Below, in pieces: positions 2,726 through 47,993 of a DNA stretch of 64,000 bases. A model generated the notes under the pieces. That model was not told where the DNA came from, did no database searches, and was given only the letters and a program-made list of their open reading frames with translations. The first letter of the stretch is position 1; each line of letters begins with the position of its first letter. Source of the DNA: Oikopleura dioica (lineage: Eukaryota > Animalia > Chordata); NCBI GenBank assembly GCA_907165135.1, contig OU015566.1, positions 12,524,001 to 12,588,000 on the forward strand, read 5' to 3'. A program made the translations under genes and the position numbers.

Positions 2726-5700
2726 ATGGACAGCGCAAGGGTCACCAAATTGCTGCAGAATGAGCTTTTGACGATTGAAAATGCAATTAAATCAGGTAGA
2801 AAACAAAAACCATAAAGTATAAGACTACAGAAATAATAAGTACTTTATTGATTTTTAATTTCCCGATGAACTAATTACATGTAACCTCAACACGTGCTAG
2901 TGTGAAATTAACGGAATTTACAATTTGTAACATTTACATAAATAAATTTGATTGTTCAGACTCGGTCAATCATTCAACCGTCCAAGCTGCCAAAAACATC
3001 ATCGAACTCGTCGAAAGCCGAGCTGGAGCATCTGGAGAACAAGTTCAGTCCCTCATCAGAATCGTAGCCGCCTATTGCCATCTCCTCGCAAACGATGAGC
3101 CCGTCTTTGTCGCCGAAAATCCCAGGCAAAAGCTCAGAAAGCTCATGCTTGAAACCATCTCCCGGCTGCCCACTCAAGAATCAGTGATAAAACGAAATGA
3201 GCGTGAGATTTCTTCGATGTGTTTCCAGCTGATCAAAAAAGACAACGAAGACAACGCTTCGATCGCGCTGAAAATCCTCATCGATCTTTACAAGAATTGC
3301 CGGCCGCCGATTTCCAGCGATGTCCGAGACTTTCTCATTACTGTTCGAATGATGTACCAGTCCTTGCCCGGCTCAATGGAGCATTTCTTCGAAAACCCTC
3401 CAAAGTACGTCCCTGGACAAACGCCGGATGAAACCAAAATTGGCTTTCTGACCAAGATGACTTACCGGGTAAACGCTCACAATCAAATTGTCAATAGTGG
3501 TGGAACTCTGACGACAAGAACCTACATTCCCAAAGCTCTGAATTCATTGGTAGTTCTGATTGAAGCTCCAATAGGAAATGGTTCCTTTACTGAATTAGTT
3601 TTTCTTTCGATACTTTTGTGACCATGATAAAGCTGTGGTTTTGATGTATCAACTTTACCGCGAAAGACTTGATGATCTTTTCCAACTTATTTCAGCCGTC
3701 CTGGCTCTTTCTCCGTCTCCACAAGCCATAGCTCGGCCAGATTTCAGAAGAGAACTTTATGTTAATCTTATTGGCGTACAGGAACAGGTCAAACTCTTCA
3801 AATTTTATCACAAGGAAGTCAAATTTCTGGACCTTTTTACAAGATCAAAAGCTTATCCTTGGTTGCGTATTTCGTCAAGCTCTTCCCCCAAAACATCATG
3901 CCATACTCACGTGATCTGCTTCTGGGACTTTTGCGGACACTGAAATCTTGTCCTTCTGAAAAAGCTGCTTATCGTAAAGAGCTCATCATCGCAGTCCGTC
4001 ATATCTCAAATACAGAGCTGAAACAAGCGTTCATCCCCCACCTGAAAGAATTATTCGACGATCAGATTCTCTTTGGCCAAGGCTTGACCGTTCGCGAGCA
4101 TATTCGTCCGCTCGGATATCATGTCATTGCAGAGCTTGTTCATCAATTGAGGACGATGCTTCCCTATGAAATCATCTCAGCAGCGGTTTTTACTTACATG
4201 ACGAATTTACACGATGATACTCTGCAACTAGGCAAGGAGTTAATATTTTTGATTCAAAAATTTTGAAAATATTTCGTCTCAAATCAGAAAAATATAACTC
4301 TGAAAAGGCGCTCATGTATTTTCCGCAAAATTAGTGGTTACCCTTATCGACTGCATCCGTCAATCAAAAGATCCATCTTTGACACAAAAAGAAGCAAGAA
4401 AATTGTTGATGAAAATTATGAATGTTTTCACTGATCGCCTCGTCTCAATGGCAAACTATGATCTCATCTGCATCCGAAAATCGAAACCACCAAAAGACGA
4501 GGAAGAGCGTCGGCAAATGGAAGCGACTTTTCAGGAAAACAAGCAGCTTCTTAAACTGCTCGTCTGTGGGGCAAAAATGGTCACAATCTATTTATATAGT
4601 CATCGTATCAACGAAATGAACATACACAGTCGTCTACCAGACTTTGGTCCATCCGAACGTCAACTCTACAACAAATTCGGCGTCAATGTCTTGAAGTCAG
4701 TTGATATTTACACTTTGAGCAGCGTGGGTAAATCGGACAAGGATCTCAAAGACACTCTGGAGTACTTTGCCAATACTTTTCTGAACCTCCCACTACCGGC
4801 CTTCAAAATCGTTAGCAGTGATATCATGGAATTTCTGATCGATCGAATGCATGAAAATCCTCTTCTTCATCACGTGGCACATCCAATTCTCACAAGACAG
4901 CACTACTCGTTTGAGTTTTCGTCGATTCTCGTGAAGCATGCAATTGCAAAGATGCCAGAAATGGGCAATCCTGGAAAACGTTCAGGTCTCTACCTTCTTC
5001 TTTTCAAACAGCTGTTCGGAACAGTCATTCATTTGCGCGGCGAAAACGAAGAAATGCTCAGACCTCATCTCGAACAAATCGTCAGCGGAGCCTTGAAACA
5101 TGCTGTTCACGCCAAGGATCCTCAGAATTTTTTCATGCTGCTTCGATCCCTCTTTCGATCGATTTCCGGCGGTGTTCATGAAAAACTTTACCAAGAGTTT
5201 CTCCCGATTCTTCCGAAACTCCTTCGAGCAATGAATCATCTACAGGCTGAGCTGCATTGGCCAGACATGCACGATCTTTTCATCGAGCTCTGTTTGACCG
5301 TCCCTGTCCGTCTTTCTTACCTGCTTCCTTTGATGAATGAACTGATGGAGCCTCTGGTCGAGGCGCTCAAAGGCGGTCCAACATTGATCTCTCAGGGTCT
5401 CCGAACATTGGAGCTCTTCGTCGACAATCTCCAACCAGACTTCTTGCAAGAAAAGATTCGACCTGTTCGGCCTCAAATGATGCGAGCACTGTGGGACATC
5501 ATCAATCGCGATGATATCATTCGATCGAGCAAGGAGAGGGAAAACTGTTGCACAGCAGCATTCCGAATTCTGGGAAAATTCGGTGGCGAGAACAGGAGCT
5601 CGCTGAGAGAAGCCCCTCAATTGGAATGGGTTGACTTCAACAAGGCCTTTTCGCAAATCATGGTGATGGAATTCAGCGACGTGAAGATGGAAATTCCTCT

Positions 5701-38100: not shown

Positions 38101-38392
38101 AGGCCTAAGATTTGGAAACTGCATACTCTTACATAAGGCCCTTAGGCTACGGGGGCTACAGTGCCTACCTGTATCCGATCCATACTTTCGCTGATGCAGG
38201 GATGCCCTTCATCGCATAAAGATGATCGTAAGGATCATCAAAATGAGCAAGCTCTCCACCTCTTTCATAGCACAATTTCGTTGCGTCAAACCAGTTGACC
38301 CCTGTATCTTCGTAAAACTCAAATGCCTTGTTTCGTGGTCCGAATTCTCTGGTTGCTAGTCCGTTTGAAAGAAAAAGTAAGACTGATTTCAT
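35187..38392 (-). CDS. Secreted C-type lectin-domain protein with Thr-rich linker and C-terminal coiled coil
   Basis: Exon 1: MKSVLLFLSNGLA..NWFDATKLCYERGGELAHF..VWIGY, spliced to SDLGNEGNW..YVRWASSEPDNRNGLEHC..FVDGDC..HVLCR. Then PPPPT/TTTTT, then heptad-rich LESTKAKLAENSSKVSKILLQL and LEKTVQQLKAKLMTFENQMSEV. Confidence 0.85.
36755..38001. mobile_element. Non-autonomous hAT-type element, ~1247 bp, in intron 1 of the C-type lectin gene
   Basis: 15-bp TIR CAGGGCTGGTAAATT. Perfect 8-bp TSD GTAGGGAT (36747-36754 and 38002-38009). Repeated subterminal TAGTGC(G/A)C motifs. Confidence 0.9.
37198..37587. mobile_element. Nested ~390-bp MITE with TA flanks (Tc1/mariner-like signature)
   Basis: AGATAAGCTTTCTTAGGGA ... 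TCCCTAGCAAAGCTTATCT is a 19-bp inverted repeat with 2 mismatches, flanked by TA on both sides. Confidence 0.6.
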
Positions 38393-38704
38393 GATTCTGT
38401 TTATTGGATTGATGCAGAATGCACGTTAGAGATTATGAAGTCGATCTAACCGATGCTCAGAAATAGATCAAGCAAAACATAATATTTAGATCACTGTTAC
38501 CGCAACTTTAAAGAGCCAGTCAGGGCAATGTGAAACTAAATTAATATTGACCGAGACTATTTTCCGGAAAAAGTAACGTAATCAATAGTCATAAAAATAA
38601 AAATAGAAAAGTTGGTTCCAGTGCTACATTTTAATGAATTGAGGAGAGTATATAACGCAAGTTAAAAATTGACACGGCCCCATCATTGTGGAGATTTCTC
38701 AGCG

Positions 38705-41700
38705 ATGACTTCACTAGAACTCTGGAGTTCTCTGACGTCTTGCATCGGCGAAATAAATGAAAGAGATATTGGCAAGCTTGCTGCGGGCAGATTGATCCTC
38801 TTTGACAAGATAATTTCACGAGCTTCCAAAGGTTTTGGTTTAAACTTCAAAGCACATTTGAATAACTAGCACCTGAGCAAGTCTTAAACTATGAAAAGCT
38901 GATATTCTCGAGGCAATTTCTATCTACAGAAAATTAAAGGATGTTTTTGGCAATAATGACGATGGTCTTGCTTTGTCAGAACCTTTTAATGAGGAATGGG
39001 GTAGCGAAAAAATCATAAACGAGTTTTAAAGACGAATAAAATTACCCTACTACAGATGGAAACGAACCTGTATCGAATCGATGGTCAGGAAGAGACGCTG
39101 TATCTCCCAGGAGGATACGCAGGTTAGTGATTCAACAAAAGATAAGTTTTCCGAGGCCTTCGGACATACTTTTCCGAAGAAAAAGATCAAGATTAAGTCG
39201 TAGCCTCAAACAAATAAAGTTTGAAATTTCTTGGAGAAACTTGTCGAGTAGGGCTGGAATATGAGCCCGAAGACCGACGTTTTTCGTCAATTATCGATCA
39301 AGATTTCTTACGGGAATGATTTCTCAAATTGCTTTCAGGACTGTATTTGGTTATGAATCAGAGTAACCGCGAACACGAGTTCAAATCGCGAAACACTGAT
39401 GCACACACTTTTGAAGAGCTCATGAAAGTGGATATGGAAAATGGCGCCAGTGCAAGTCATTTTCGAGTTGTAGCGAGTTTCACCTTCAACTTCGACATAT
39501 TGAAGAGTGAACTTTGGGATCGATGTAAGCTTCTTTTTCAGACAGTAAACAAACTTTGTCTCAAGACACGATAAACTGGAAATACAAAATCGGCGGATAC
39601 AGTGTCCTCACAGCGCCCAACGAGTTCATCGCACGAGTTTTGATAAATATCTGTCCATACTCGAAGGAAGAAATCTACGAGATGCTCCTGACAACCGACA
39701 ATACGATGGTTTTCTTGATGACTCAGATGCTCAAAGATTTAAGCGTCAAGGAAGCACAAGAAGTGGTCTCGATGCCAACTCAAGTTGCCCTGTCATTTCC
39801 TTATTATGCGACTCGGCGGTACTACCGCTCCACGATCTTTCTCCTCGACAATTTTCCCAATCTCGAGCTGAATTTCTGCAGCCTCTTTCACAACAGCCCT
39901 GGGTTGGTTTTCAAGCCGCTGATTGAGCGTCTTCTTGAAAGAGGCCTGAATCCCTTCATTGCTCCGAAGTACGGTGCGATCGATCCGACTTTCGTGAACT
40001 GGTATCTTTACGAATACGCCTTCGATGCGCACGAGGATTTGAAAGATTGCAGGCTGAAGAAGGAGATGTACTTCCGCGTAGATTCTTTCACCCAGTACAA
40101 GGAGGAAATCGAGCAACTTGAGATCTACGATAAGCTGGTTAAAAAATACGTCACAGGACACGGACCAGATGGAACTGCTCTGACAACTACGTATACTTCA
40201 TGGTACGACATTGAATGCAACGAAAGCTGCACTGTATGTTGCAATCAGGCAATTCCCTCGATGAGGCATTTCTTTGGTCAACTCATCAAGAAGAACAAGG
40301 TTCTCGGGCATGGAGGACAAGGATCTGTCTACGAATGCACCTGGCACGGTGAAAAAGCAGCGGCGAAATTCATCCCCAACCGAGGAGTTCACATAGCCAA
40401 GACTCTACAAAAAGCCCCTGAACAGCTCATGGATCCGATGCGAGAAAAGAAAATGAAGCAGTACTTCACAAGCCAGGCTTCTGAGTTTTACATCGGACGC
40501 AAGATCAAACATCCTCATGTCTTGCGAATGCTCGACTTTTTCTTGCAGCATAAAAACGGCGTGGACGAGTTCGTCATTGTCTCCGAACTTTGCGATGCAA
40601 CTTTGAGCCAGATCGAGTTCAATATGTCATCGTTTATGGAATACTTTCGTCAGGTTTTGTCTTTCGAGAGTTCTAAGATTGGGTAATAATTATAGGTCGC
40701 TGGCGCAATTAAATCGATCGGAGAAAAAGGGTTAACGCATGGTGACGTAAAGCCTGAAAACATACTGCTAAAAAAGATGACACAGGGCTTCTTTCCACTC
40801 GACTTGGGGACTTCGGAATGGCTGGGATTATCGGAGGAACTCCGCTCTTCGTGGCTCCGGAAGTATCAAGAAAATCCATCCCGTATCTATCGGATATCTA
40901 CTCCCTGGGCATCTCGATTCTATTTACAGTTTTTGAGATACAGTTGGCTTTCAAGCTCTATCTCGTCCCAGGTAGTCGTGCCAGTGCTTTCTCAATTCTT
41001 TTTACGGCTGTAGTTGACAACAAGATCCTCCAAGTTGCCAAGAAAAAAATACAGGAAAACGAGCTTGTGCGATTCATAGCACGAATGATCTCCGACGATC
41101 CGACAAAACGGCCGAGCATAGAAGAAGTTGAAGATTTCTTAGGAGGGCAGAAATACTCTGAAAAGAATTCAGAAAGAATAATAACAGCGAAAGATCTCGG
41201 AATCAACAAACACCTACAGGTGATTAGAAGGGACTCGTCTGACGATGTAAAGCGCAGAGCAGACAAATTCAAGCAAAATCCGTTTTCCAACGTAAAAATT
41301 ATGAATTCACTTCATCATTTGTCTTCGTACGCAGAATTATCAAAGGCCGGATGCAATTAAAAATAGCTTATTTCCTTATTCTTCCTTTCTTCCTTCAAAT
41401 TCATCCTTTCAAGACAACAAAAGCGATCAGCAAACGAGTTCACGACCAGGTTCAGTAAAAGCTCAAATCATTTATATGCAGTAATTAGGGTGACTCATTC
41501 AAATGCTGGGCTTTCTCAACTGCCAGCATGCTTCGATCTTCCCTTCGTGAAACAATCAAAGGATTGGTTTTCTTTTGATGCTTTCTTCTTTAGCAAAAAA
41601 AACCTTTTTAAATCAATCAAAAGCGCTTACGAATTTTTCCAAGGAAGAAAAAACTGAGCTTTTGGCTGTTATTGATGATCCATCGCACCACAAGGTTATC

Positions 41701-42382
41701 CTGTGATTAAACAATATATCAATATATTTGTAGACTTTACGATCGGAATTAATGATGAACGTAATTCCGACCAAAATGAATGCGAACGAGGATGAAATTC
41801 AAGCAGCAATGCTTCATCACGTGATGCAACGACTCTCACGGCCTACATTACTCCAGCGAGAAGGTTTGATACAATGAAATACGCAGATTGCTAAGCTACT
41901 GCTAGGGATTCACCTCCTTGGCAGCTTGAAACCGATCTTTGAACGAATCGGACAGGTTCAACCAGTTCTGGAAATCTACTCCCATCCAAGTGAATACGAC
42001 GAGCATGCAGCAGAACTGCGTCAATTTGGAATTATCGGCGATTTTTTCGACGCCCTAGATTACAAAAAAACCCTCGTTTGCCCAGTCAAGTATCATCTGC
42101 AGTGATTTTCATTGTTGCTTATTTGATATTTCAAGCACTGGATTGATGAACGTAAAACATGCAATGTGCCTCTACGAATTCAATGAAAACGATCATACAT
42201 TCGTCTTCAAAAACAGCTCGTCAGAAGTGACAACGATAACACTTCCGCTTGGAGCATCTGAGGAAAAGGTCAATTTTAATTTCATGCAGCATCTTTTGTG
42301 ATTAAATAAGATTGTACAAGTATTGACCTTTGCAAAGCCCAGAGTTGGATACCACATTTCATTTCTTCGAACATCGCTCTGA
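38705..42382 (+). CDS. Kinase-papain fusion, copy A (unknown N-terminal region + Ser/Thr kinase + papain-like cysteine protease); apparent 1-nt frameshift at ~40771-40775
   Basis: Kinase: LGHGGQGSVY, AAAKF, SEFYIGRKIKHPHV, VSELCD, HGDVKPENILL, DFGMAGIIGGTPLFVAPE, SDIYSLG, DPTKRPS. Protease: VHDQ|GDSFKCWAFST, KHAMCLYEF, FVFKNSS. About 13 short exons. Confidence 0.85.
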
Positions 42383-42835
42383 ATTTATTTTTAACTTGAG
42401 CAACTCTCTTTACTTGCTTCTCGTTTTGTTAAATGTTTTTAATAAATCTAAACTGCATTTTCATAATTATTTTTACTGTAAGAACATCCAGACCTTCACA
42501 TCGCCATTCTTGAAAAATTCCAGCAACTAGTTCCCGCTGAACACATTATTCTTCTTCCATTTCAAATTCTTCCACTAAGAAGGGTCCTCCAGGCAAAAAA
42601 AATTAATTGCTCGCTTGGTGTCGCTTATTCCGGCTTTTGTTCTCAAGGCAATCATCATAATCATCGGTAAGAAGTGGCAATACGACATTTATTATCGATC
42701 GCAGCACTCAGACCTGTTCATTTCAATATTGATTTTTATTCGTAAAAGTGTCCATTCCAGCGCATTTTTAAAACTTTTGTCTAGTGCTGAATTTATCTCT
42801 CCACTAGGTCGATAAAAGAGAGAAGTTTATGAGAA

Positions 42836-45800
42836 ATGAGAAGAGAGATCACTCGCCGAAAAAGAACGATGGGTACCTCCGAAATGAGTCGACTAGACTT
42901 CTGGAGTCTTAAAACTTCCAACGCGGACAAAATGCTTGATGAAAGAGATATCTCAGAACTGGCTGCAGGAACGATGATCCTATTTGACACCATTATACAG
43001 CGATCGAGCGAAGGATTCGGTTTGATTAGTAACGGTCGATAATACCATAAAATTGAAAATAAGCCGAAAAAAGATGATATTCTTGAGGCAATTTGTATTT
43101 ACAAAACACTCAAATATCTCATTGGCAAAGATGACAACGATTTTTACATGTCTGATTCTTTCAAAGAGGCAAGAGTTTTCAAGTATCAAAAACTAATTAA
43201 AGTCTTCTGAAGCTTGAAGAACAACTGTACCAAATCGATATCAAGGAAGAGACCCTTTATCTTCCTGGAGGCTATGCAGGTCTTTATTTGGTCATGAACC
43301 AAAGTAATCGAGAGAACGAGTACAAGTCACAAAACACTGACCCTCACACTTTTGAAGAACTCATGAAAATAGACTTGGAAAATGGCGCCAGTGCAAGTCA
43401 TTTTCGCGTGGTTGCCAGCTTTACGTACAACTTTGAAATTCTGAGAAATGAACTTTGGGATCGATGTAAGGGAGCTTTTAGATTTTTTTAGGTTAAATTT
43501 TTTTCAAAAGATCCAATTAATTGGAAGTACAAAATTGGTGGATACACAATTTTTACGGCGACAAATGAGTTCATTATTCGGATTTTGTTCGGGAAAAGCC
43601 CATATTCCAACGAAGAAATCTATGAAATGAACGTTTCGGCAGATGAGACCATGGTCTATTTGATGACCAAAATGCTGGAAGATCTCTCAGTCGATGAAGC
43701 CCAAGAAGTGATCTCAATGCCGACACAGGTCGCGCTCTCCTTTCCATACTACGCGAGCCGACATTATTATCGCTCAACAATTTTTCTGTTGGACAACTTT
43801 CCGAATCTCAACTTGAATTTCTGCGGCTTTTTTGCGAACAACGCCGGGATCATTTTCAAGCCGCTCATGCGAAGACTTCTGCAAAGGGGCTTGAATCCGT
43901 TCATCGCGCCGAAGCATGATAAAGTGGAGCCGAGTTTTGTCAACTGGTATTTGATGGAGTACGCTTTCGAAGCTCACGAGGAATTGAAAGATTGCAGGCT
44001 GGAGAAAGACGTCTACTTCGAAACCAGCTCATTTCAACAATACCAGAAGGAAATCGAGGAGCTAGATATTTACGACGAATTGATCAAAAAATACGTAACT
44101 GGATATGCGAGCGACGGTACAGCTCTAACAACCACTTACAACTCGTGGTACGACATAAAGTGCAATCCGGACTGCGCTGAAGATTGCAATCAGTCCATTC
44201 CATCCATGCGACACTTTTTCGGGCAGCTCATTGAGAAAAAGAACCTTCTCGGGAACGGAGGTCAAGGATCAGTCTACAAATGCTCCTGGCATGGCGAACA
44301 AGCAGCCGCCAAATTCATTTCTAATCGAGGAATCCATCTTCAAGAATTCCTACGAACGAAGCCTGAAAAACTGATGAACGCACTACGAGAGAAGAAAATG
44401 AGGCAGCTCTTCACAAGCCAGGCTTCTGAGTTTTACATTTGCAGGGAAATGCAGCATCCATTTGTTCTGAGAATGTTCGACTTTTTCTTGCAGCATCGAA
44501 ATGGTGTCGACGAGTTCGTCATTGTCTCCGAACTTTGTGATGCAACACTGAACCAGATTGAGTTTAATATGTCATCTTTCATGAACTATTTTCTACAGGT
44601 TTTATTTTTAAGATCTCAAAATATTCAAATGCGAAATTTTAGGTCGCGGATGCAATCAAATCCATTGGAGAAAAAGGACTTTCACATGGTGACGTAAAGC
44701 CCGAAAATATTCTTCTCAAACGAGATGAAGCTGGGGAACTTTCCGTCAGACTAGCTGATTTCGGGCTGGCCGGAATCGTTGGCGGAACTCCTCTATTCAT
44801 GGCGCCGGAAGTCCTGAAAAAATCGATACCACTTTTTTCCGACATCTACTCTTTGGGAATATCGATACTGTTCACTGTTTTTGAGATACAGTTGGCCTTC
44901 AAACTGTACCTCATTCCAGGTAGAAGGCCTTGAATTTTGAATTTAAAATTTTTTTAGTTGACAGCAACGTCCTCCGGACGGCAAAATTGATAGCGCACGA
45001 AAATGACTTGATAAGTTTCATTTCGAAAATGATCGCCGATGATCCACAAAAACGACCAAGCATTGAAGAAATCGAAGAATTTTTGACCATCCAGCGCGTC
45101 ACACAAAGCAGAGACAGAAAAATTACAGCGAAGGATCTCGGAATCAAGGAGGACTTGCAAATCATAGAAAGGAGTATTTCGAATGACGTGAAGCGGAGAG
45201 CCGAGAGATTCGAGCACTGTCCGTTTTCGAGAGTGAATATTATGAACTCATTGAATCATTTGACGTCTTATGAAGAATTATCGAAGGCCGGATATTTTTA
45301 ATAAAATTGGAATTTTTAGTTTTATTTCAAAATTGAATTATTATGGTTCTGAACGATAAAAAATTATATCTCCTGCAAAGACAACTAAAATGATCAGCAA
45401 AGTAGTTCACGACCAGGTTAAAATAATTAATTTTTTTTAACAAAAATGCGTTGTCTCTAGGGCGACTCATTCAAGTGCTGGGCTTTTTCTACAGCGAGCA
45501 TGTTACGATCTTCCCTTCGTGAGACAATAAAAGGACTCGTTTCTTATTAAATTTGGTAAAATTTTGCATGAAATCATCTTTGAACGAAGAAAAAGCATTG
45601 TCAACTTTCTCCGAAGACGACAAAAATCAACTTCTAGCTATTCTTGACGATTCCGCACACCATAAGGTTTGCAAATGTCGGATTTCCTGAAAGAAACAAT
45701 ATTAAGACGCTAAGATCCGAGCTGATGATGAACGTGATTCCAACAAAAATGAACGCAAATGAAGACCAAATCCAAGCAGCACTGGTTCATCACGTGATGC

Positions 45801-46346
45801 AACGACTCTCCCGACCAACTCTTCTCCAACGAGAAGGTGAGCATCAACGTTCATCTATTCTACCGGTAATATTGATTAGGTATTCATCTTCTGGGCAGCT
45901 TGAAACCAATCCTCGATCGAATCGGTCAAGTTCAACCTGTGCTTGAAATATACTCGCATCCTACAGAATACGACAAATACTCAGCGAATCTGCGTTCGCT
46001 CGGGATCATTGGAGATTTTCTCACTGCCATCGATCAAAGAAAGACTCTTGTTTGCCCAGTCAAGTAAGATCTGAAAAACCAGCATCTTCAATCTTTGATT
46101 TTCTTATCTAGTACCGGATTGGCAGATATGAAGCATGCCATGTGCCTCTACGGATTCGACGAAGAAGATAGTACATTCATCTTCAAGAACAGCTCGTCAG
46201 AAAACACAACGATCAAGGTTCCCCTTTCCTCTTCTCAGGTCGAGGTCATTGATTGCACACAACTAAAAGTCAAACTAAACGTTCTGATGACCTCGATTCA
46301 GCCAAAACTTGGCTACCACATTTCATTCGTTCGAATAGCGAATTAG
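42836..46346 (+). CDS. Kinase-papain fusion, copy B (tandem paralogue, frame intact)
   Basis: LGNGGQGSVY, AAAKF, HGDVKPENILL, LADFGLAGIVGGTPLFMAPE, SDIYSLG, DPQKRPS. Then VHDQ|GDSFKCWAFSTASMLRSSL, KHAMCLYGF, FIFKNSS. Colinear with copy A. Confidence 0.88.
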
Positions 46347-46720
46347 TTCAGAAAATCTAAATGTTTGCCCTCTAGGTTATAAAGTTCAAATAAATGATAA
46401 TTGTTCATGTCCCTATGTCAATCATGCTAAGATTCTTTCTTGAGTATTGATTTTAAAAGTAAATTACTGTAGTAAGTGCAGTGCCTCTACGTTGTGAGGA
46501 AATGAAACTTCGCCCAAAGAAATAAAACTAAAATTGAACGGAAATATTTTTTGGCAGATGATTATTGACGACAGCAACATCTGGGGAGCGAGAAATGGCA
46601 AAACTTATCGAGATTGATTTGTGGAAATTATTATAATGAATCTCCCTCGATATGAGAAACGCACAATTTGAAGCTTCGCATCCTTGATGAAGTTGAGCGT
46701 TGAAATATAAACGTAAGATT

Positions 46721-47993
46721 CTATAAGTTTTCGTAAATAAAATTGAGTACAGAAAATTTGCTCGCATTAAAATGCCATTTATCAGAAATCCAGACTTGAA
46801 GAGGACCAGTAAAGACATCTTCCTCTTTGAATGACCATGATTTGATAATGTTTCCATTGAAAAGCACTTTTTTATCAAATTTTCTCGTTTCGTCGTTAAA
46901 TCGTTGCTCAATCTAAGAAATCAAAAAAATCAGGGTGGTCATGTTTACCTCAAGACATTGAAACTGTCCAAGCAAAGCATCAATCAAAAACTCCTTGACA
47001 ATATTCCGAGGTCGATTGGAAACTGTTATCATCATTTTTGTTTGGTAACCCTTCGCATTGAAGACAGAGAAAAATCCATCACCGAAAGCAGTGAAATTGT
47101 TAGATCCTCGTGTGTGAATCTTTTGTGGGGTGAATTAATGCAATTATAAGCTAGTTTTTGACAAGTTCAGCCCATGAATGAATAGCATTAGCTCCGTTGT
47201 CCAAATTCGCTTCTTCTGGAAAATTAATTCCCACTCTTATACGGAACTCTTTTGTTGCATTTATTTCTCCCTTCTTTGTATTCTTGTTAGGCGTCCATGG
47301 TGTTTCGCCGATAATTTTGACACAGTTATCACGGCTCATGCAATTCGAGGGACATGGATTTGAAGGATCTTGCGATGTTGTAGTTGTAGTCATAATCGTA
47401 CTTGTTTTTGTCTTTGTGGAAGTTGTCGTGGAAGAAGTTGTAATTTTAGTAGTCGAACTCGTCGTAGTAGTCGAGGTCGTTGTAGTCGTTGTAGTCGTTG
47501 TTGTCGTGGTGGTCGTAGTGGTCGTTGTAATCGTAGTCGTTGTTGTCGAAGTGGTCGTAGTTGTTGTAGTCGTCGAGGTCGTTGTAGTCGTTCTTGTCGT
47601 TGTTGTTGTTGTGGTCGTAGTGGTCATAGTTGTGGACGCCGTTGTAGTCGAAGTGGTCGTCGTATTTGTTTTAGTTGTCGTTGTTATCGTTTTAGTTGTT
47701 GTTATTTTAGCTGTTTTAGTTGTAGTTTCTATCGTAGTCGTGAAAGTTATAGTCGATAGCGTTGTCGTTGCAATCATAGTTGCTGTTTTAGTATTAGTTT
47801 TAGTCGTTGCCATTAAAGTCGAAGTTAAAGTTTCGTTGAGAATAGCATTAGCGGTTGTCGTCTTTAATTGATTTTCCGTCGCTGTAGATATCGTATAATC
47901 TTTCTCAAAGGACTCTTTAGTATTCAAATAAGTTGGGGTGAGTAGAACGCAAATAAATAGTGCCAGCGGAATTATATAAAAAAGTTCTCTCAT
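46721..47993 (-). CDS. N-terminally anchored Thr-rich mucin-stalk protein with a C-terminal lectin/LamG-like domain, paralogue A
   Basis: Hydrophobic N-terminus LFYIIPLALFICVLL, poly-Thr (ACN)n tract, then DPSNPCPSNC..C..ATKEFRIRVGINFP..AIHSW|IHTRGSNNFTAFGDGFFSVFN..GQFQCLE|IEQRF..LFNGNIIKSW..FTGPLQVWISDKW..FIYENL*. Confidence 0.8.

Follow-up and report, generated by a model that had tools for sequence, protein, structure and literature searches.

In RNase L and IRE1, ligand binding drives back-to-back dimerisation of a kinase fold, and this switches on a C-terminal enzyme. Bleomycin hydrolase and aminopeptidase C (family C1B) are cytosolic cysteine peptidases of the papain fold that have no propeptide and no disulfides and carry a CW-x-F motif past the catalytic Cys. 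Here, we describe a tandem pair of genes from the chordate Oikopleura dioica that can be compared with both groups. The pair lies in a window of 64,000 nucleotides (nt), which is the whole stretch of DNA that was analysed (GenBank assembly GCA_907165135.1, contig OU015566.1, positions 12,524,001 to 12,588,000 of the forward strand). Each gene probably specifies a cytosolic chain of about 950 amino acids (aa) made up of an ankyrin-like region, a kinase and a papain-fold peptidase, and both probably belong to a large family restricted to Oikopleura or the larvaceans, for which we propose a mechanism by analogy. A literature search found no published account of a kinase/papain-like fusion or of this Oikopleura family. 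This agrees with a sequence-only reading of the window, according to which no characterised animal protein is known to have this architecture; the kinase-papain-like family is real and apparently undescribed.

The C-terminal domain was compared with the papain family (MEROPS C1A: papain, cathepsins L/K/B and actinidin). It carries Gln-x5-Cys-Trp-Ala-Phe-Ser and then His-Ala-hydrophobic-x-Leu-x-Gly/aromatic in the same order, with Lys-Asn-Ser 18 residues past the His and a Gly-Tyr-x-Ile strand later on, and its similarity to a C1 profile is significant. It differs in its fusion behind a kinase, in a middle stretch of about 130 residues, between the Cys helix and the His strand, that cannot be aligned to C1, in the failure of Pfam to find its exon pieces and in its lack of Gly-rich WG motifs. 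Furthermore, none of the secretory or lysosomal C1 features sought in the gene models (signal peptide, I29 propeptide, Cys22 partner and Trp177) was found. C1B enzymes resemble the domain, by description only, as cytosolic, propeptide-free and disulfide-free papain folds with CW-x-F, but they are self-compartmentalising hexamers and are unfused to signalling domains. C39 bacteriocin-processing peptidase domains (PCAT1, ComA) were the top structural neighbours of the modelled His/Asn half, and they too are papain folds fused to another machine.

RNase L (ankyrin repeats, pseudokinase and KEN nuclease) and IRE1 (sensor, kinase and KEN nuclease) share with the Oikopleura chain a repeat or sensor region, a central kinase fold and a C-terminal hydrolytic effector, and when P0010, a contiguous homologue, was compared by structure over its N-terminal region and kinase, RNase L came 23rd among the matches. 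However, the Oikopleura effector is a Cys peptidase and not a KEN RNase, and its kinase keeps all catalytic residues; the homology seen is confined to the generic ankyrin and kinase folds, and ligand-driven dimerisation would be shared by analogy. RIPK4 and ANKK1 also combine ankyrin repeats with a Ser/Thr kinase in one animal protein, and RIPK4 clusters were among the Atlas structural neighbours, but in these proteins the kinase comes first and there is no peptidase domain, and the Oikopleura kinase has no specific RIPK affinity.

The window is AT-rich (GC about 0.40), and its open reading frame (ORF) track is broken up across 38.7-46.4 kb. DNA alignment of 38600-42420 with 42700-46420 gave 68-86% similarity only in blocks between short unalignable stretches, and this block-wise conservation is the pattern of exons separated by tiny introns. 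Exons were chained with GT/GC..AG introns, using paralogue conservation as the guide and a tblastn check of each block. The tandem pair proposed by the sequence-only reading was found on the + strand, with a repeat spacing of about 3945-3976 nt; the spliced length of about 990 aa that it gave is corrected to about 946 aa by the model of copy 2.

38705 to 42382, + strand: copy 1 gene, about 14 exons, chained with conservation between paralogues as the guide
42884 to 46346, + strand: copy 2 gene, intact 946-aa model with 13 exons and no internal stop
42884-43019, 43074-43174, 43213-43465, 43511-44598, 44643-44919, 44958-45286 and 45381-45416, + strand: copy 2 exons 1-7
45461-45518, 45590-45666, 45707-45836, 45880-46063, 46112-46238 and 46302-46346, + strand: copy 2 exons 8-13
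45287 to 45380, + strand: copy 2 intron from the kinase/linker exon to the protease micro-exon, predicted GC donor (GCCGGA), covered by no transcript

The locus contributes one apparently intact and one frameshifted tandem copy. The introns measure 38-94 nt in copy 2 and, with one exception, in copy 1. In copy 2, 11 of the 12 are GT..AG; the remaining one is GC..AG, and its donor GCCGGA is also kept in copy 1 at 41346. In both copies, a 36-nt micro-exon opens the peptidase domain in phase with the exon before it and has Gln as its last codon. The exon junctions of copy 1 are uncertain in the first ~100 codons. In addition, copy 1 has an extra 216-nt intron (39123-39338, phase 1, GT..AG) at a place where the coding sequence of copy 2 is uninterrupted, and this intron was gained or lost after the duplication.

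The central domain is probably a divergent Ser/Thr-type kinase with all catalytic residues, as judged from its motifs and from Pfam.

40270 to 41142, + strand: copy 1 kinase domain, limits approximate, with introns 40654-40695 and 40972-41013; from Pfam Pkinase on pieces and homology to copy 2
44215 to 45086, + strand: copy 2 kinase domain, from Pfam Pkinase on pieces

Copy 2 has GNGGQG at 411, AAAK at 431 (Lys 431), HGDVKPEN at 541, DFG at 565 and APE at 580. The claim that every catalytic motif is present therefore stands for copy 2; copy 1 has the same motifs, but not in one frame. The kinase is non-RD (HGD), and its DFG-APE segment is very short, 18 residues, as had been stated from the letters. 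Pfam Pkinase (PF00069) scored 27.7-30.7 bits on the exon pieces, just below the cut-off of 31.7 bits, because each piece holds half a domain; on contiguous homologues it reached 91.6 bits (P0010) and 80.8 bits (P0012). The best PDB matches were generic (CDKs, Aurora and CTR1, ~E 1e-10), and no kinase subfamily could be assigned from them.

In front of the kinase lies a region to which Pfam assigned no family in copy 2; Pfam Ank was also absent, at E up to 1, from the window exons, P0003 and P0010.

43213 to 44214, + strand: copy 2 N-terminal ankyrin-like region, ~residues 80-400; from Atlas clusters and the structural matches of P0010

A search of 1.84 billion representative proteins returned only nine relatives at E <=1e-10, all of them exon-sized fragments or the contiguous homologues P0010 and P0012, so that by sequence the region is lineage-restricted. 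Nearly all protein-language-model neighbours of the copy 2 and P0010 regions were ankyrin-repeat clusters, with scores of 0.86-0.87 that serve as a lead only. Furthermore, the Atlas structure neighbours of P0010, found with a low-confidence model, were ankyrin proteins (template-modelling scores 0.42-0.47). The N-terminus had been described as matching nothing recognisable; it resembles ankyrin repeats, and with moderate confidence we regard it as a divergent ankyrin-like repeat region.

The C-terminal domain follows in both copies and holds the four catalytic positions expected of a papain-like peptidase.

41414 to 42382, + strand: copy 1 papain-like peptidase domain, C1 profile 22.7 bits
41414-41449, 41489-41546, 41594-41694, 41734-41863, 41906-42089, 42136-42268 and 42338-42382, + strand: copy 1 peptidase exons
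41447-41449 (Gln), 41504 (Cys), 42158 (His) and 42212 (Asn), + strand: copy 1 catalytic codons
45381 to 46346, + strand: copy 2 papain-like peptidase domain, C1 profile 24.0 bits
45414-45416 (Gln740), 45476 (Cys746), 46134 (His898) and 46188 (Asn916), + strand: copy 2 catalytic residues

The Cys codons (TGC, 41504 and 45476) and His codons (CAT, 42158 and 46134) lie where the sequence-only reading had placed them. It was also accurate in giving Ser at both papain positions 22 and 177 and in finding, from the sequence as read, no signal-like hydrophobic stretch at the N-terminus and no propeptide. Asn is 18 codons past His in both copies, and a GYHISF strand stands near the end of the domain in copy 2. 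A C1 profile was made from C1 ORFs that a degenerate DNA pattern had picked from giant-virus and baculovirus contigs (109 found, 107 used). With this 107-sequence profile the spliced domains reached 24.0 bits (copy 2) and 22.7 bits (copy 1), compared with 8.4 bits for the best of 10,000 shuffles, and three O. dioica-like paralogues reached 15-18 bits. In the window copies the Cys and His/Asn regions were aligned collinearly, QGDSFKCWAFS on QGqCGSCWAFs and KHAMCLYGF..FIFKNS on dHAvllvGY..wivKNSW. When the family alignment was compared with a C1 alignment by hhalign, the probability was 69% and E was 4.6e-5 across the Cys helix. In addition, a Cys-segment profile from six homologues gave 17 matches in PDB, all subthreshold, 11 of which were C1 peptidases (actinidin, rhodesain-like, cathepsins K and L, ervatamin and EP-B2), each at Q19-C25. 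The corresponding profile of the His/Asn half found no C1 match in PDB and only weak UBA matches.

AlphaFold2 was run on a contiguous piece, the His/Asn half plus tail of the homologue L003, with a 17-row alignment (predicted local distance difference test score, pLDDT, 63.6). The structural matches of this low-confidence half model were mostly of the papain fold, clan CA: C39 domains, CcbD/CtaG, cathepsins L and B, falcipain-3, xylellain, Der p 1, staphopain C, AvrRpt2, calpains and herpesvirus-type deubiquitinases (DUBs). Its last 55 residues matched UBA domains. Furthermore, every paralogue has Gln, Cys-Trp, His, Asn and the later Gly-Tyr-x-Ile strand, even where identity falls to about 25-40%. 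The independent evidence for papain-likeness is the collinear His/Asn match together with the fold matches. Our favoured assignment, which these comparisons make the probable one, is a clan CA domain whose sole sequence affinity is to C1 and which is too divergent and atypical for an ordinary C1 member; we do not file it as such because it lacks the propeptide, the disulfide partner and Trp177 and because its middle third cannot be aligned.

Beside the Cys exon, the 20 nt past its predicted donor (41547-41566 and 45519-45538) read RETIKGL in frame, with only synonymous differences between the copies, and the same stretch is ordinary intronless coding sequence in the paralogues L001 and L012. 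This conservation points to an intron of recent origin or to a second, alternative donor at the Cys exon. A longer exon ending in ...RETIKGL was provisionally set aside because copy 2 has no canonical acceptor of the right phase, and the exon was kept in its shorter form (donor GTGAG/GTGAA).

The same arrangement recurs elsewhere. Chromosome OU015568.1 of assembly GCA_907165135.1 carries the nearest relatives that have an annotation. When the copy 2 protein was used in tblastn, kinase and then peptidase, with strand and spacing unchanged, were found in two more tandem copies from O. dioica Okinawa (L001), one of which has a 936-aa gene annotation that takes in both domains, and the same order was found in the plankton metagenome contigs L002, L003/L004, L007, L008, L010 and L012. 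Gene order and exon phases are conserved in at least ten paralogous loci. In L001 and L012, one open exon carries both the linker past the kinase and the ...IHDQ Gln motif of the peptidase, with no stop between them. These results, with the purifying selection described below, support the proposal that both domains would be made from one gene, and the family appears to be restricted to Oikopleura and related plankton sequences.

A UBA-like three-helix tail (MGF motif) is seen past the peptidase in some distant paralogues from plankton metagenomes (L003:4380-4550, L007:3640-3800 and L009:760-845); the window copies do not have it. This tail hints at ubiquitin-linked substrates or at isopeptidase activity.

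Selection was assessed from the proportions of synonymous (pS) and nonsynonymous (pN) differences between copy 1 and copy 2. pS was 0.61-0.79, which is saturated, pN was 0.07-0.25, and the ratio of nonsynonymous to synonymous rates (dN/dS) was ~0.06-0.16 in the kinase, the linker and the peptidase domain. In the N-terminal region, pS was 0.79 and pN 0.18, and dS was incalculable owing to synonymous saturation. Purifying selection between diverged paralogues, as claimed from the letters, is thus borne out.

Several results count against a functional kinase-peptidase chain at this locus. Of the two Pfam families put forward by the sequence-only reading, Pkinase matches the pieces, but Peptidase_C1 (PF00112) matches none of them in the window, L002 or L003; these scans covered single-exon pieces, and the similarity to C1 reaches significance only once the exons of the domain are joined. 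The C1 profile gave 3-7 bits on the distant paralogues L003, L007, L008 and L009, no better than chance, and the test is partly circular because one Cys motif served both to flag the locus and to choose the sequences of the profile. Confidence in the structure models is low (pLDDT 63.6 and 47.8), and no fold match reaches the usual significance levels. Copy 1 is frameshifted. No read or contig in three RNA runs and a plankton metatranscriptome spans the kinase-protease joins. The only copy 2-like contig, 248 nt long, comes from a marine plankton metatranscriptome; it shares ~99% identity with copy 2, and its splice falls exactly at the predicted 44-nt intron 44599-44642. It also lacks one G of GGGG at 44733-44736, a 1-nt deletion that would truncate the kinase before DFG. 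Finally, the mechanism proposed below is drawn solely from the analogy with RNase L and IRE1.

The alternative that survives best, and that we nevertheless hold to be unlikely, is that the peptidase-like domain is a pseudo-enzyme or a non-proteolytic papain fold (a DUB-like isopeptidase, a transferase or a binding module) and not a C1-type endopeptidase. Its nearest structures are C39-like peptidases, CcbD/CtaG-type condensation enzymes and viral DUBs as much as cathepsins, and the UBA-like tail of some paralogues would suit a pseudo-enzyme or isopeptidase. Trp177 and the C1 disulfides are absent, and the segment from the Cys helix to the His strand is unlike C1. By sequence, however, C1 is the sole family matched, and it is matched at both catalytic regions; in addition, the conservation of four catalytic positions across deep paralogues would argue for some catalysis. 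We therefore keep a divergent papain-fold peptidase as the preferred reading of this domain.

The next alternative is that the locus is decaying, and two features of copy 1 bear on it.

40770 to 40775, + strand: A6 homopolymer of copy 1, where A7 is needed for the kinase frame; -1 frameshift between HGDVKPEN and DFG
42269 to 42337, + strand: likely last intron of copy 1, 69 nt, GT..AG, holding the in-frame TGA 42299-42301

In copy 1, HGDVKPEN is in one frame and DFG and APE are in another, the summed exon length is 2 modulo 3, and the copy-to-copy spacing goes from 3947 to 3948 at the A-run. It was thus too strong to say that each copy retains both catalytic sets, as the copy 1 kinase is frameshifted at this run. 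The 57 codons past the frameshift, read in the kinase frame, have 84% protein identity to copy 2 with saturated pS, and copy 1 has therefore retained this frame through almost its entire history. Either the A was lost very recently, inactivating the copy, or its absence is an error of the assembly, for which homopolymers are typical sites. L010 was considered as an allele of copy 1 in a check of the frameshift and was ruled out, since its ~70-82% DNA identity makes it a separate paralogue.

A premature stop at 42299 was rejected as a second lesion, as the 69-nt GT..AG intron removes the TGA and restores the tail length of the family. This interval is homologous to the 63-nt interval 46239-46301 of copy 2, and both are multiples of three. 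Conservation breaks at 42272 and resumes at 42336, flanking the candidate intron, and without the two intervals the tail is as long as in all other paralogues. The apparent stop of copy 1 therefore probably lies in an intron. An in-frame stop was also observed at L001:13962-13964, in the large N-terminal/kinase exon of the paralogue annotated as a 936-aa gene; the annotation must bridge this stop by a small intron, and it may be another stop hidden in a tiny in-frame intron.

According to the decay explanation, both copies would be pseudogenes or dispensable, polymorphic-null members of a fast-turnover family, and we judge this to be quite unlikely. The frameshift of copy 1 fits it, as does the frameshifting deletion at 44733 in the sole metatranscriptome contig that matches copy 2; this deletion may be an error due to low depth, a null allele or a further copy that is almost identical. 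Three species-labelled bulk oligo-dT RNA runs gave 0, 0 and 1 reads over 40500-46400, so nearly no reads. However, this absence is no test of expression or of the joins, because the Oikopleura lineage sampled in the runs may be a diverged one and the presence of the organism or lineage in them is not established. dN/dS is ~0.1 with saturated synonymous change even past the frameshift of copy 1, the lesion of copy 1 is in a homopolymer, and the copy 2 model is fully open with canonical splice sites at 11 of 12 introns. Copy 2 looks functional from its sequence, and we prefer a family under purifying selection, with one copy frameshifted, to a decaying locus.

That two neighbouring genes, one for the kinase and one for the protease, have been joined by an artefact of the gene models is very improbable, for although the joins 45286/45381 and 41345/41414 are spanned by no read or contig and the donor predicted at the kinase-protease join is non-canonical (GC), order, strand and spacing recur in at least ten diverged loci, the peptidase starts in a 36-nt micro-exon whose sole ATG is internal in copy 2 and which has none in copy 1, the linker is stop-free into the Gln motif in L001 and L012, and the 936-aa O. 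dioica Okinawa gene is annotated across both domains.

For the single kinase-peptidase chain, gene structure, domain identities, conserved domain order and purifying selection are shown by the results above, and a mechanism can be proposed by analogy. The ankyrin-like part would bind a ligand or a partner protein, the kinase domain would act as a dimerisation or autophosphorylation switch, and the peptidase would be the output, cutting cytosolic substrates. These substrates would perhaps be ubiquitin-linked, which we propose because some paralogues end in a UBA-like domain. The ankyrin-like N-terminus would strengthen the idea of a sensor, by the parallel with RNase L only. By the same kind of reasoning, a propeptide-free cytosolic C1-like peptidase would need some control, for which the fused kinase and ankyrin-like parts are obvious candidates. 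The only hints of a role in immunity or cell death are the tandem expansion, the restriction to one lineage and the non-RD kinase. A bolder version, which we regard as rather improbable, is that these proteins form a new class of single-chain cytosolic sensor-effectors, in which a ligand or partner protein at the ankyrin-like part would lead to kinase dimerisation or autophosphorylation and so turn the peptidase on, and that they have expanded in larvaceans, as tandem arrays, to serve innate defence or regulated cell death. If this is true, the family would be the proteolytic counterpart of RNase L.

A kinase and a papain-fold peptidase in one polypeptide would tie signalling by phosphorylation or dimerisation directly to irreversible proteolysis. 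Tandem arrays, lineage restriction and purifying selection suit a system of regulation or defence peculiar to this lineage, in an animal whose genome is very reduced. The family would also be a compact natural case of a propeptide-free C1-like peptidase acting in the cytosol, and how such an enzyme is held inactive becomes a testable question, with the fused parts as candidates.

The pair is flanked by two ORFs on the - strand. Just 5' of copy 1, an ORF at 38168-38392 has a weak Pfam Lectin_C match (E 0.006, under the cut-off) and is probably an exon of a neighbouring lectin-like gene. Just 3' of copy 2, at 47154-47993, a 280-aa ORF, to which Pfam gave no match, is hydrophobic at its N-terminus and contains a very long run rich in Thr (mucin-like).

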